In this document: piece by piece, positions 44,479 through 52,190 of the stretch | How positions within the stretch are numbered: the stretch's first letter is position 1 | How the letters are laid out: every line of letters begins with the position of its first letter | Origin: Trichosphaerium sp. ATCC 40318 | Taxonomy: Eukaryota; Protista; Tubulinea | Assembly: GCA_038496445.1 (NCBI GenBank) | Contig: JALMLS010000309.1 | Location: 186,001 to 250,000 of the forward strand | DNA: 64,000 nt | Direction of reading: 5' to 3' | Position numbers and translations under genes: made by a program | The notes under the pieces: model-generated | Database searches by the model: none | Told to the model about the DNA's origin: nothing | Seen by the model: only the letters and a program-made list of their open reading frames with translations

Positions 44479-47400
44479 TTATTTTACAGCAAAGTCAATA
44501 ATATCTGTTATCTTGTTGGAAACTTTTGTTCGCTTGAACTTCTTGTGAAGATACAATGCTGCTTTCACATTGCCTTTAAAAAAAACGTGAGTGGTAACCA
44601 AGTGCAAATAGGGGGTTGTCGTACCGCAATACACCAGTACAGGAATTTTCTTCCACTTTTTGTTGCCTCGCAATTCTGCAACTAGTTTTTCAGCAGCAAG
44701 CTCTCCACCATCTTCTTCTCGATACCTATTCGTTACAATACGAAGTTTACTACTAGAACAAAATCCATTAAACTTATGTAGCCATGCGATAAGTTCATTG
44801 GAAGAAGTCATTTGAATGACCTAAGAAAAAAATAAGAAACCACAAAACAAACGTTAGGTGAATCAATTTTTTTTTACCTTTACTTTCTTGGGCTTATTCT
44901 CAAGCATGGCCACTACCTGTTTGTTCTCTGATGAAAACTTATCATCTATCCATATAACAAGGGACTTTGCATCACGCCAAGAAAGTGCGAATAAAGTCAA
45001 ATCCATGGCATTAGTATGTTTATAATAAACTAAGTAGCGAGGCAGTATCTGATAAAAAAGTTAAAACAACCAACAAAAGTCATAGGCAAATAAAAGTGTT
45101 CACCTGATTTTTTGAGAATACTACAATCTCATCAGCGTCTGGCGTTTCTGTAGGTTTACAAGGAAAGTAAGTCCTTGCGTTACCCTTTTGTTTTACAACA
45201 GCATAATGTGAGTCGTATCCGGGCTTCGAAAACAATTAACCAAATAACAAAAACATTATAGTGTACCATGCAGGGTTTGCCCAATAGTGATTTTGGATCT
45301 CCCATAACAGGATCTTGAGTAACTGGATATGATTTACCCATCATGACCCATGATATTAGCATACACTGTTCTCCAGTTTCTTGTTTTAACCCAGCATAAA
45401 CAGAACCTGTTGAAAAAAGTTGTTAACAACGTTTTTAATATTATTGGTCACGTGCCATATTTAGGATACTGGGTAAAGTATATACCCTTTCCTTTAATTC
45501 ACTAGTTAGATATAGTATGGGAAAAAGACGATGAGTTACCGAAATACCCAGGATCTTGTTGTTTTTTTAGTTCATGTGGTTCTAAAAAGTTGGTTGTTGC
45601 AATTTTAAAGCTGATATCCTATCACGCCAGTTAGCATTTTTTTTTAAAATGACGAGCATCTATACTGTACCTCGGATGTTCCATGAAATCCTGCAATAAG
45701 ATTTATACCTTCATTACCAGATACGCGCATAACATAGTTTTGCAACTGGCACATAATCCTAAGGAACTTTTACATCCTACAAACCTAGAAATTATATCTG
45801 TTTAACTCACCACTCTTTGTACTCTTTGTCGCCTGTAAAAAAATACATGTAAGCACGTGAAACAGAATAATACGTGCACTATAAAAAATTTGACGTACGG
45901 TCATCTGTATCATGCTCAGACTTCTTCCTTTGGATGGTTCTTTCAACCAAACCATCATAAAATTTTCTGAAGTTGTTTTCTAATGTTGCATTATCAAAAA
46001 ACACAATCTTTGACAGCGAAAAGAATGACTCCTTGTTAACACCCATGAATCTATAGAACATATTTCTAGCTCTAATATATTCTTGAGAACGCTCCTAAAA
46101 CAACAAGTTGTGAGTACAAACAGATTGTGTTGAACTATAGTTGCCTTATCAGTTTCATTGGCAAGGAGCGTTGTAAATCGTAACCCTTCCTTTTCGTTCC
46201 ACTCTCCTTTCTTAAAGAAAGATTCACCGCAAACACTGCTCCATAAATCCGTTCTAACATTTTGAAGAACAGGATAACCTCTCGCCAAGTGCGTTTCTGT
46301 CACTTCACTGCCTAAGGTCGAGAGTCAAAAACCGATGATGACACAGTATTACCTGTTTGTTGACTTTTGTAGGGTACTGGCGGATGCTCAATAAAGTATC
46401 CGCTTTGAACAGCTGCTGGACATTGAGGTATAATTGTTGGATCAAGACGGGACAAGAAAGGATCAAGACACTCCTAATAACTATGTCAGACTAACTATTT
46501 GGATTTACTGAGTTCTGTACCTTCCAAAGATGCGGTGCTGCACCACGCACAACAACATTAAGAACTGGCGGCTGGAAGTAAAGTACTATGTCATTATCAT
46601 AAAAATCTCTTAATATAACAGAGTTACAGAAGAGCTTGTAACGGACATTGTGGTAACCTATAACATATCATTTAACAACTTAACCTATAAACACGTGACC
46701 GTACATCGCAATTGTACTTGCAAATCAGTGAAAGTATCAGAAGATAGCAGTTTTGATGTTACACAAAACGCTAGAAACTTGGGCGTATCATCTAATAAAA
46801 TCAAGCCTTCAGCTAAAACCTATGTGCGTTGTTAATACACGTGTCAATGATGAGTGAACTTACTGGATCACCGTTTTCGTCAGCGTGCACTTGTTCTACG
46901 TGATCAAAGGCCACCGTATCTTTGACGATTCCCTTTAGTTGTAGTAGATCCCAATCTTCATCTGTAGGGCGCATAACATATGTTGTTGGGTCATGACCTC
47001 TATTATCTTCAACAAGAATTTTGTTATCCTCACAATGAGGTCCTTTCAATGCTAAAGATGGAAAATATAGCATATCAGCCTTTGGACGGAGTGACAGTAT
47101 GATGAATCCTCTACACCCATAGTGTGCCTGTAAAACAATTATAAGATACGGTTTTTGGACATACGTTAGCATATAACATACCTCTTCTGCCTTGTTGAGG
47201 CGGAAACAAAACTTCATTACAACAAGAAATTTCATTACAAAATCAGCTTGTTTTTTATCCTCCAAGCCCAACATCTTTGATATCCTGTCTCTCGCTTCTT
47301 GTTCTGTCACTACTGCTGATACTTGCCTTAACTCATTTTCTTTTAAAAGTCTTTTAACATGCTCTTGTGGACCAACAAAGGCGCTCATGACATGTGATAA

Positions 47401-49871
47401 TATCTTTGGATTGATACAAATAGTAAGTGATTCCTACCATAAAAAAAAATGTCAGTTGAGTTTTGTTTAACAGTTGCACGTGTCACCTTGTCGAACATGA
47501 TATCACCAATAGAATGTAAGTAGTCTAATCCACCTATAACTTCGACAGGTGCCATATAAAGAGTTTTTACAGCATGGGCCAAAATCTTTGAACTGCAGAT
47601 AGGAAGAACATGTCAAAACTAGGCGATAGTGTATTTGGCGTACACTGGCATAAAGTCATTCATCGGTCCTTTTTTATCCCTATGAGACTCTTTTATTTGT
47701 TTAAGAAGATCCAGATATACAAGAGGAACATTAGGAAAGTATTTCTTCAAACGCTTTGCTTCTGATGCAAGGATTTCTCTGAAATCTGCTATATTCTTTG
47801 CTGGAAAAAATAAAGTCAGCAAAACTGTTTTACCTTTCTGGTTTTAAAATAACCTACCTACGCATGAACCAAAACACAATAATGCATGTGGAAAGTATTC
47901 ACGTAAAATGATTTTCATGGATTGTTCTGTCTGTGATAAATCACCAGAAACAACATCCAATTTTGAACCCATAACAATGATTGAGTATAATTTCTTGTCT
48001 TGCTGATATAGCACTTTCTGCAACGTTTTACACCAGTGAATAAGATGCGCTTTACTTTCTGCAACAGGTAACGAAACATCAACCTTACTCAATATAAATA
48101 CACACAATGCAGAGAGAAAAAGAGGGAAAACGCACAACTATGAGGTAAATTGATAGTCTTTTTGAAAAGAAGTACTTATGAACTGCCATATACTCCATCT
48201 GTCCTGCAAAGTCTATAATATTGAAAGAAACGCCATACATCCTAGATTATATGTTAGTTTTTCTGATATCACGTGATACTATATCAACAAGAAAACAAAA
48301 AAAGCTACATGCTTGAAAATTTTTGTGTCGAATCCAATAGTGGATGCCACATTGTCTTGCTTCGCTCCTGATAATGCATTTACCAAGGTTGTTTTGCCTT
48401 TTATTTCGTTAGGTATATACAAGTTGAATAATCGAGTTACCTGATCCACCATGACCAAGTACGAGAAGTTTCGCTGAAACCCCTTTTGAAAACTTGTATG
48501 GTGGTAAAAGTTCTCCTATTCTCATTGAAGACTCGTTTTCAATACCTCTTTTCAGGTCTTTAAAGTGCCGCTTTAACTTCTTTACACATGCGTTGTTTCT
48601 ATCGTCAAAAGGTATAACTTTTGCCTGTAGCCAACGCCCAATACCAGTCACTATTGCTCATTTTTAGCATTATTTTTCGACTCAAACGTTTTGGATTGTA
48701 CCTTCCAATAGAGGAATGTGCGACCGCTTAGGATGCAAAATATATAATGTAGGCTTCTGATCAAGATTATCTAGTATTTTAGAAATAAGACCGAATCCCC
48801 ATGTTCGTCTCAAAGCCATAATGAATATGACATTATAGACACTTAAATCTATATTGGGATTTCGAATAACATCATAAACACTGTAGACCTCTTTGATTGA
48901 CAATGCACCAACAAGATTACCAATAGAAGCCTTGTTTTCTGATATAGCAACAGCTTTCATTTTGAACTCATGAGGTGTAGACTTCGACCCTAAATTTTTA
49001 CCTGGCAGCCCAGACATGGTGCCTGTTACTCTGTCTATTAGATCCATTGTATCTCCAGCAACCTTTGGAGGGATCATTGCTTCGTATTTAGGCATCATTC
49101 GATGTGTTAAGATGGTCAATCCGAGAGAAGTAAGCAAGCCTTGGGTAGACTATACACCAGTCAACAACATCTAAATACGAACTTCGAGAAAAAACACGTG
49201 CTGTATACTTTTTTTCGAAAGAGAGAAGAGATGTTCCATATTTATGAGATAACTCTTTAGCTGCATTTGGAGGAATCTTGCTGAATTCGTGATCCATCTC
49301 AATGATTTTCTAAAAATAAGTTATTCATCCATAATGATCTACTTCTAGATACATACAGTGGGCGGAAAGTTGGCATAGGATACATCCATCGCTGTTTTTA
49401 TATACTCTAGCTTTATTCTAGCAAGTGCAAACGAGTCTTTGTTCGAAGCATAGAATAATACGATAAAACCCTCGCAACCTCGTCTGTCAAGGTGTTAAAT
49501 ACGTTATATTGCGTCGGGGCAGTATTCGCACATTTCACGTTTAGTTTCTTCTGGTGCAGCTCCTTTTTGCGTGTATAACAGCTCCATAGTTCTTTGAGTG
49601 CCTGACGCATCAGGAAACGTAACTGAATCGCCCTGAATTTATAAATTAAGGGATTTCAATCCAAAAAGGACTTACAACATCTATAATACGTTAACAACAA
49701 CTTACATAAAGAGCTAGTACCATTTATGAACCCATGATCTGTCCAGCTTGAACCAAAAACGAAAACGCGCACACTTGACCTCACAGACTTTCTTAGGCTT
49801 GAAGCTAACAAGCGAGGGTCTTTATTGACCCTCACCTTTCCCTTTGACATCAATACCTTTCCCTTTGACAT
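44479..49871 (-). CDS. Roco-family protein: degenerate Ras-like domain, Roc GTPase, COR, PARP-type ADP-ribosyltransferase, receiver-like domain
   Basis: KLLVLGHGGSGKTTLV, STIG, IIDFAGQMEY...H.YF, IIVMGSKLD; LDYLHSIGDI, YFPSL (COR); FHGT, DPGYFGKGIYFT, GYDSHY, DEIVVF, QILPRYLVYY; VIWIDD...IPVLVYC. The start codon and one junction near 49150-49210 are uncertain. Confidence 0.8.
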
Positions 49872-50008
49872 CAATGCTGGTCTTTAATTGAATCATAACT
49901 TAGACTGACTTAAACATGGGCAAAACTGTGTTTTTTTTTATTTGGGTGAAAATGGCATCTACAATACGGTTCAAAAGGAACGGTTTGGGGGTTTTTTGGT
50001 GACACAGG

Positions 50009-52190
50009 TTACTCAATACATTCCCCTACTGTGGCTGATATTCTGGTAGGGTCTGATATAGTGACTGTACTTTGGAATCTACGGAACAAACCACTAATGA
50101 AATGACAGGTTAGTGAACACTTGGGTATACTTTGAATTGTGGTCGTACAACATGTTAAAAGATCCTGAACCAGGGGCAGTCTCGAAAACTCTTATAGCTT
50201 GTTGAAGTCTTTCGGCAGTAACCAAGAAAACTTGATTCTATTTTATAACAAGTAAGAAAAAAAGAAGAAATATACTACTAGTAGTCCTTTTTTTGTTTTT
50301 AATAAGCTTACGTTGAAAAATATGATTCCTTCTCTTATTGAATCTGAAGTTAATTCCCAATTTGGTGCAGTACCAACAACATTAACATTACTACGGGAAA
50401 AGTAAGTGAGTTGTACTAAAAAACAGTTGAAGTAAAAGACGAAGCGTACTTGAAGATAATATTGACAGAGCCGACTGTATTGCTATCTCTGGTAGCGCCA
50501 ATATCCACTCCTCCAACAATATGTCCCGCTACCATGATGGTGCGAGCAACAGGGTCAAATGTAACTCTCATATTTCTTTCGATACATGTAACAGTAGTAG
50601 GACGCTAAAACCACAATAAGAACTTACATCACTAAAAAATTCTGGTAGCAACATACTCGGCCAGCATTATCCAACCGCATGCAATATGATGGTGGAGCTG
50701 GAGGGCCACTGGCATCGCCTAGAACGTATTGGCCTGTTGGAAATACACCTCCCGCGAGTGTAAAAGCGCTACATCCCGAAACAGGTGAGACTACAACAGG
50801 AGCATTTGTTGGTGAGTTGGTTGGTGGTGCAAAAGGCGCGTTCGTTGGGGTTAACTGTACAGGTGCGTTTGTAGGAGAGTTCGTTGGTTGTGGAACAGGT
50901 GCATTCGTAGGTGGCTCCGTTGGAGGCGGAAATGGTGCGTTAGTTGGAGCTGTTGTAAATGGGGCGTTTGTTGGAGCTGCTGTTTGTACTGGGGCGTTAG
51001 TAGGTGGTTGTGTTGGTGGTGGAACAGGTGCATTTGTTGGCGGCTGTGTTGGTGGAGGGAATGGCGCATTTGTAGGTGTTAGCACTGGAACAGGTGCGTT
51101 TGTTGGTGCTTGCGTTGGAGGAGGAAATGGGGCATTTGTTGGTGGGACAACTACAGGAACAGGGGCGTTTGTAGGAGGTTGTGTTGGTGGTGGGAATGGC
51201 GCATTTGTAGGTGTCAGTACGGGAACAGGTGCATTTGTTGGTGGCTGTGTTGGTGGAGGAAATGGCGCATTTGTAGGTGTTAGCACGGGAACAGGTGCAT
51301 TTGTTGGCGGCTGTGTTGGTGGAGGGAATGGCGCATTTGTAGGTGTTAGCACAGGAACAGGTGCGTTTGTTGGAGGTAGCGTTGGGGGTGCTACTGGAGC
51401 ATTCGTTGGAGAAGCTGTAACTTGCGCTTGGGCAATTACTCTAACAATGTTCTTCCACATGCACTGCGCGCTAGAAGGCCTTCTGAACATAACCCAAGCC
51501 TGCGTTATATGTGAGCACAGTTATATCTATCACGTGCGCATGAAGCGGTATCAAAAAACGAAAAATATACATACTTGTGCTGTCAAAGTGCCAACGTTTG
51601 TGGCAGGTGCTGTCCAAGTAAAGGACCTTGCGTCTGAAACGTCAAAGCGATTTCTATGACGTATGGAGTTTCTACAACCATCTACTAAGGCTACACCTGT
51701 AGTGTCGAACTTTGCATCATCCGCTATGAACGTCCCGTGTTCAGTTGAGTCATCTGGGTCGTAAATAGACATAAGGAATCCCTAAAAATCATTTTAACGG
51801 ACACAATACCTAACAAACAAAAAAAATCTCAGATTGTAGATTTTTCAGACAGAGTTTGTGTTACAATCGTTTTTTCGCTGTGTTTTACGTACGCGCCATT
51901 CTAAAGGGGCTGTCGCAGTAAAGGTAATTACGTATGTTTCACCTGGTACGTAACCTGAAGTAAATACCGTAGATACGATGTCACCAGGCAAGGAAGGTTG
52001 AGGTCTAATTAAATAAATTAAAGAAAGTGGGGAAGATAAAGAAGATTACGCACTCGTTCGAACACATACCAGGGCATATTGGAGAGGTGGCTGGACATAC
52101 CGATATAGGTGGTGTGAGGCCTCCAAATGACACAACGGTATGCAGAATGCAAGCAACAATCAAAACCAAGATAAGCTGTGAATGTTGCAT
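50009..52190 (-). CDS. Secreted Reeler-domain protein with Pro/Thr mucin-like stalk
   Basis: Signal peptide; YVPGETYVIT...RGFLM...HGTF...C..SIRH...SFTWTAP; PPTNAP repeats. Confidence 0.8.
50800..51415 (-). repeat. Coding tandem repeats PPTQPPTNAPVPVLTPTNAPFP (~66 bp)
   Basis: Visible in the sequence and in the ORF track. Confidence 0.95.

Follow-up and report, generated by a model that had tools for sequence, protein, structure and literature searches.

The window analyzed here is a 64,000-nucleotide (nt) stretch of DNA from Trichosphaerium sp. ATCC 40318 (GenBank assembly GCA_038496445.1, contig JALMLS010000309.1, positions 186,001 to 250,000), part of a 70-Mb amoeba genome (contig C25). 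Its minus strand very probably carries one intact gene of the Roco family, encoding in order an N-terminal region, a small alpha/beta domain, a Roc GTPase, a COR domain, a linker, a PARP-type ADP-ribosyltransferase (ART) domain with the His-Tyr-Glu (H-Y-E) triad, and a CheY-fold pseudo-receiver; by analogy, the product would be an enzyme controlled by nucleotide state and dimerization. A first-pass annotation, made from the sequence alone, had knowledge of no characterized Roc-COR-PARP protein. Full-text literature searches agree, as they turned up no publication in which Roc-COR is combined with PARP or another ADP-ribosyltransferase.

Every motif quoted in the first-pass annotation was located in stop-free pieces of the minus strand, from 49.5 down to 44.5 kb, with the order Roc, COR, ART and receiver-like tail kept (feature coordinates are collected in Table 1). 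Predicted splicing joins these pieces into an open frame of 1,226 codons that runs from 49149 to a TAA codon at 44481-44479, using 20 introns of 41-66 nt; the predicted structure is one of ~23 short-intron exons in one open frame without a stop or frameshift. The Roc motifs lie across e1/e2 (GHGGS/GKT), in e3 (DFAGQ) and in e4 (SKLD). The ART motifs lie in e14 (GFHGT), across e15/e16/e17 (GYFG/KGIYFTQYPKYG/SVYA) and in e18 (GYDSH and DEIVVF), QILPRY spans e18/e19, and the tail motifs lie in e19 (VIWIDD) and e20 (LRIVTN and IPVLVYC). Nineteen of the 20 introns are GT-AG, and the remaining one, between e16 and e17, is GC-AG; its donor is GT in four paralogues (L054, L055, L057 and L061) and GC in the closest paralogue, L043. 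Two in-frame, stop-free stretches, at 47181-47128 and 44624-44574, have canonical splice sites. Since the same positions are occupied by stop-bearing introns in the paralogues, these are probably two additional introns that are spliced here too. Both have lengths that are multiples of three, and their retention would keep the frame, adding 18 and 17 residues, respectively.

Evidence that these exons belong together came from the paralogues. Genome searches with the COR exon, the tail exon and exon e17 of the ART gave ~50-57 matches apiece, with constant mutual spacing; e17 has ~57, of which 37 are near full-length and high-scoring. The size of the family is accordingly put at about 40-55 copies, as estimated from these exon matches. 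In 20 of 20 paralogues fetched, e2-e20 are collinear, with order and spacing kept. Together with the number of matches per exon, this speaks against a chance occurrence of the motifs, a reading that is rejected. A reading of the locus as two separate genes is likewise rejected, in view both of the collinearity of the 20 paralogues and of a relative from outside the genome, L063, which holds all parts in a single open reading frame (ORF). The first-pass claim that the Roc-COR part, the ART and the tail are parts of one gene is borne out through relatives, and Roc, COR and the output domain are predicted to lie in one polypeptide.

The L063 contig (metagenomic, 5,062 bp, 38% G+C) contains an intronless ORF of 1,496 aa (L063:93-4580) with the order Ras-LRR-Roc-COR-PARP-tail, where LRR denotes leucine-rich repeats. 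Pfam identifies the Ras domain (3e-45), the LRRs, a second GTPase (Roc/Arf), COR-A (6e-4) and PARP (1e-3) in this ORF, and window exons e3, e7, e9 and e11-e20 align to it in order. All sequence searches reported here were run per exon or on natural stop-free frames of relatives, and window exons were joined only to count stops.

The ART domain had been described as carrying an apparently intact H-Y-E set, and several lines of evidence uphold this description. The catalytic residues correspond to H in GFHGT, Y in GIYF (e16) and E in DEIVVF. Among 20 copies the E never varies, GYDSHY and EIVVFS show little or no variation, and the longer motifs EIVVFS..Q and CMLISW.M.G are near-invariant. Exon-wise comparisons with hhalign used a 42-sequence PARP alignment (A4) as the target, with column shuffles as a control, and the best local matches followed the order of the known PARP motifs. 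FHGT of e14 fell on HGS at 67-70 (H68; P 0.14), with 21 of 100 shuffles reaching the score. GIYF of e16 fell on 104-108 (Y107; P 2.5e-4; 0 of 90 shuffles), and e17 aligned with Y118 to G137 (P 0.085; 9 of 90 shuffles). For e18, GYDS fell on 154-158 (P 0.027) and DEIVVF on 190-201 (E193; P 0.0046), and the observed score was reached by none of 90 shuffles. These data place the predicted H-Y-E triad in register with the PARP catalytic domain.

Additional evidence for the PARP assignment came from relatives. Exons e12 and e14-e18 align at 41-82% identity to residues 178-403 of L065, where the Pfam PARP score is 42.5 bits (threshold 26.7), and e12, e14, e16, e17 and e18 align at 45-80% identity to residues 514-771 of P0042, where it is 48.7 bits. 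The ART exons also align collinearly to residues 1121-1335 of L063, where Pfam PARP gives 19 bits (1e-3) against the same threshold. When 11 contiguous relatives were combined into a profile (A11), it matched 52 distinct sequences in the PDB, all of them PARP catalytic domains, including ZAP/PARP13 (4e-7), the closest solved match, and PARP2 (4e-6), with alignments that extend across H, Y and E. The clade has a signature of its own, consisting of YPVTE, GY[DN]SHY and DEIVVF.

For the GTPase, Pfam Roc detects window exon e3 at E 9e-4, below threshold, and the natural e2-e3 read-through frame of L043 at 30 bits (E 7e-7; threshold 27). Together with the G1-G4 motifs, these matches point to a Roc-type, Ras-like GTPase. 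The putative COR domain is very divergent. With hhalign, the e7a family matched exons from elsewhere in this genome that pass Pfam COR-A and belong to other genes (P 1.2e-3, centered on LNPQWL), and e7 aligns to residues 684-784 of L063, where the COR-A match scores 20 bits against a threshold of 35.3. A COR exon search of 1.84 billion representatives gave one weak match only, P0001, which bears COR-A at E 2.7e-4. The best solved-structure matches of the Roc-COR part of L063 are the Roc domain of LRRK2 (3e-7) and the M. barkeri Roco, and a word search with this part found a canonical LRR-Roc-COR-kinase protein as its nearest match (E 6e-4) and nothing else.

The resemblance of the tail to a response-regulator receiver, also proposed in the first-pass annotation, is supported at the level of predicted structure. 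AlphaFold2 modeled a natural read-through frame of a paralogue (L046:5104-5451), which is 53% identical to window exon e20a, as four beta-alpha units, with a predicted local distance difference test score (pLDDT) of 63. The best rows of a Foldseek search with this model were receivers (E 0.015), and nearly all of the top 50 matches in a wide VIA search, which does not depend on Foldseek, were response-regulator receivers, the best with Z 9.2 and a root-mean-square deviation of 2.4 Å over 83 aligned residues. The CheY-like fold is thus supported for strands 1-4 only. An acidic pair follows strand 1 (WIDD/WVDD), as in receivers and pseudo-receivers with this beta-alpha fold, but the tail differs from receivers at two positions and in having no family match at the sequence level, in either Pfam or PDB profile searches. 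Where strand 3 ends and receivers have their phospho-acceptor Asp, there is an invariant Asn (LRI[IV]TN; T-N) in 14 of 14 aligned copies, none of which has the acceptor Asp, and the residue after strand 4 is Cys in place of Thr/Ser. The tail is therefore best named a pseudo-receiver, predicted to be dead as a phospho-acceptor.

Several points weigh against the interpretation of the locus as an intact Roco-family gene with a PARP-type output. Splice junctions and transcription are predicted from the DNA sequence alone, one intron requires a GC donor, and the 5′ end of the gene model is incomplete, with candidate first exons only. Taken singly, the window exons fall below the Pfam PF00644 threshold for PARP, with no match, and give no Pfam COR-A match; COR scores are weak throughout, and COR-B was judged by eye only. 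Exon-wise family profiles searched against the PDB returned neither PARP nor COR, yielding nothing or spurious alphaRep repeat matches. The tail model is that of a paralogue, has medium confidence, and is missing the last strand and helix. Catalysis, GTP control and targets are assigned by analogy only. Three other comparisons were also negative: hhalign of the exons gave no significant match when only one PARP sequence was the target, exon hidden Markov models did not match the canonical PARP loci of this genome, and adding fragments of exon alignments to read-through frames gave no gain in score across intron-derived columns. Relatives nonetheless support the domain identities, since for PARP they pass the Pfam and PDB profile searches in which the window exons fail; for COR-A their support is weaker.

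Selection was estimated by comparison with L043, the sister copy on contig C41. Synonymous divergence (dS) is 0.9-1.7, near saturation, and the ratio of nonsynonymous to synonymous divergence (dN/dS) ranges from 0.09 in the ART, through 0.12 in Roc, 0.17 in e10/e11, 0.20 in COR and 0.27 in the tail, up to 0.34 in e0-e1. All parts of the gene are under purifying selection, and the combination of near-saturated dS with a low dN/dS in every part indicates long-lasting constraint. The ART is the most constrained part, while the N-terminal part evolves fastest. The modules ahead of the core also vary. Long MORN-repeat arrays of differing length precede it in most paralogues (Pfam 1e-77, 2e-31 and 3e-43 in three copies) and are absent from the window copy, from L043 and from one copy on contig C19. 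The first-pass statement that no LRRs or kinase are visible holds for the window copy; MORN repeats are found in paralogues, and LRRs or ankyrin repeats in relatives.

Relatives outside this genome indicate how widely the PARP clade is distributed. Searching metagenomes with the e18 profile turned up 11 loci, L063 among them. On the P0042 contig, the preceding gene calls have ankyrin repeats and a faint Roc, and look like parts of one split gene with P0042. Another amoeba, Copromyxa protea, also has transcripts with a PARP of this clade (P0043 and P0044), and these bear LRRs or TSP1. More broadly, P0043, P0044, P0045, P0047, P0049 and P0050 (1,100-1,300 aa) have LRRs (TSP1 in P0044) and a C-terminal PARP of this clade, with additional EGF-like and DUF4215 modules in P0045, P0047, P0049 and P0050. 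Judged by their domain content, these proteins represent a second, receptor-like architecture with the same output domain. In bacterial contigs (L075-L106), members of the PARP clade are 25-38% identical, and the labels of the metagenome-assembled genomes include Protochlamydia, Parachlamydiales (Chlamydiae), Legionellales, Francisellaceae, Rickettsiales, Gammaproteobacteria and Verrucomicrobia, with 11 matching loci in one gammaproteobacterial genome. Chlamydiae, Legionellales, Francisellaceae and Rickettsiales are mostly intracellular lineages. Ten bacterial contigs were scanned for fusions, which involve Ank, Sel1, LRR, TPR, SH3, kinase or SidE-PDE modules, and Roc-COR was found in none of the ten. 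Two scans of viral contigs found no relatives, and two ESM Atlas feature searches gave no informative match.

By analogy with characterized Rocos (LRRK2 and that of C. tepidum) and with PARPs, the C-terminal enzyme is likely controlled by guanine-nucleotide state and by dimerization through COR, and the ART likely moves ADP-ribose from NAD+ onto itself or a target. The pseudo-receiver would serve as a regulatory or oligomerization module and not as a phospho-acceptor. The variable N-terminal modules would set the input, through MORN repeats in most copies, and through LRRs or ankyrin repeats in relatives; the window copy has neither.

It is possible, although doubtful, that the family is a set of immune or conflict receptors similar to NLRs, in which invaders would be detected by the variable N-terminal repeats, with Roc-COR as the switch and PARP as an NAD-consuming or target-modifying effector. 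The lineage-specific expansion, the variation of the N-terminal modules and the rapid evolution of the N-terminal part fit such a role, as does the fusion of the same PARP clade to Ank, Sel1, LRR, kinase and SidE-PDE modules in genomes with labels from largely intracellular groups. A further parallel is found in brown algae, where LRR-ROCO proteins (LRR-Roc-COR) have been proposed as immune receptors (PMC11378527). The brown-algal proteins likewise form an expanded protist Roco family with variable repeat modules; PARP or ADP-ribosylation is never mentioned in that work (PMC11378527). In contrast, the characterized Rocos of amoebae serve chemotaxis, cytokinesis and trafficking, and are not known to act in immunity. 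Given the number of copies, the swappable front modules, and the occurrence of the same PARP clade in genomes labeled Chlamydiae or Legionellales, an immune or conflict role is worth testing. A broader and more speculative proposal is that amoebae might have a class of innate-immune receptors in which Roc-COR replaces a STAND NTPase as the switch. These would combine swappable sensors (MORN, LRR, ankyrin or Ras-LRR) with an effector of the PARP type, and would be engaged in an arms race against intracellular bacteria that deploy the same PARP clade as effector domains.

Alternatively, the ART domain could be a pseudo-enzyme, able to bind NAD or ADP-ribose but not to transfer it, and the protein a scaffold or sensor. 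Pfam PARP scores for the clade are low, and among solved structures the clade profile comes closest to ZAP/PARP13, which is catalytically inactive. This explanation appears improbable, since H, Y and E are all present, the E does not vary among the 20 copies, and the ART has the lowest dN/dS of any part of the gene. It is highly improbable that the window copy is a decaying or silent duplicate whose intact frame is a remnant: the GC donor and the missing MORN array might suggest decay, but the ~23 exons are open, constraint against a near-saturated dS extends to every part, and the GC donor is common to both copies of the pair (window and L043).

The interpretation of the locus as a gene for a Roco switch with a PARP-type output invites comparison with both parent families. 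Rocos such as LRRK1/2, DAPK1, MFHAS1, Dictyostelium Roco1-11/GbpC and the prokaryotic Rocos share with it a central Roc, repeats or other modules ahead and an output behind; in Rocos COR follows Roc, as the putative COR does here. The output in these proteins is a kinase, a death domain or TIR, whereas here it is a PARP-type ART with a pseudo-receiver, and the putative COR domain here is very divergent. The PARP catalytic family (PARP1/2, PARP4, PARP12 and ZAP/PARP13) shares the order of core motifs and the H-Y-E triad. In contrast to that family, the gene showed none of the regulatory, WGR, macro or zinc-finger modules of PARPs, the clade has its own signature, and the domain is fused to a GTPase switch. 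Roco proteins have been studied mainly because of LRRK2 and Parkinson's disease, and a long-standing question is how Roc-COR controls the attached enzyme. A natural family that joins Roc-COR to a PARP-type ART offers an independent output for testing the coupling of switch and enzyme, and would add a GTPase-gated member to the PARPs.

Table 1. Positions in the window of the parts of the Roc-COR-PARP gene and of its noncanonical intron, with the evidence for each
Feature	Position	Strand	Evidence
Upstream exon U4 (RGCEGFIVLF...ANFPPT), N-terminal region	49357..49483	-	56% identity to L043, E 4e-13
Upstream exon U5 (KIIEMDHEF...KKYTAR)	49196..49309	-	34% identity to L043
Exon e0, disordered linker and small alpha/beta domain ahead of Roc	48702..49149	-	38% identity to L043
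Roc GTPase, e1-e4 (48656-48441, 48397-48289, 48241-48136, 48083-47858)	47858..48656	-	P-loop GHGGSGKT, switch I T, DFAGQ, SKLD
Putative COR, e5, e6, e7a (47433-47182), e7b (47127-46864), e8, e9	46521..47800	-	hhalign, P0001 and L063 mapping
Linker, e10 and e11	46136..46473	-	e10 kept in 20/20 fetched paralogues; e11 aligns to L063 1074-1116; no family assigned
PARP-type ART, e12, e13 (22 nt), e14, e15, e16, e17, e18, first 10 codons of e19	45019..46094	-	Collinear mapping onto relatives
GC-AG intron between e16 and e17	45407..45455	-	GIYFTQYPKYG/SVYA reading kept by no other splice
CheY-fold pseudo-receiver tail, end of e19, e20a (44820-44625), e20b (44573-44482), stop 44481-44479	44479..44985	-	AlphaFold2 model of paralogue

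The extent of the gene had been given as 44479-48500 in the first-pass annotation. The 3′ end at the TAA codon stands, while the 5′ end has to be moved: because e0, U4 and U5 are conserved with the closest paralogue, the predicted gene starts upstream of 48,500, at 49,483 or beyond. A 46-nt GT-AG intron separates U5 from e0, with the frame kept, and e0 joins e1 in frame. In an AlphaFold2 model of e0, residues 62-149 have a pLDDT of 77-91; this folded part gave generic flavodoxin-like structure matches only (Z ≤ 6.5) and no specific match. A Pfam search with U4 gave no match. The gene may have a further exon at 49632-49532 and may start near 49871. The candidate start, in the 49196-49883 region of the minus strand, carries a direct repeat of 17 nt (ATGTCAAAGGGAAAGGT). 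A degenerate Ras-like domain in the upstream exons of this region (49196-49883), suggested by eye from DASG for DxxG and EMDH for NKxD, is not supported by Pfam or by BLAST against the Ras domain of L063. Just upstream on the minus strand, a 298-codon open frame (50627-51520) consists mostly of Pro/Thr repeats of the PTNAP(V/F)P type, and is probably a separate gene for a mucin-like secreted protein, beginning near 50.6 kb.

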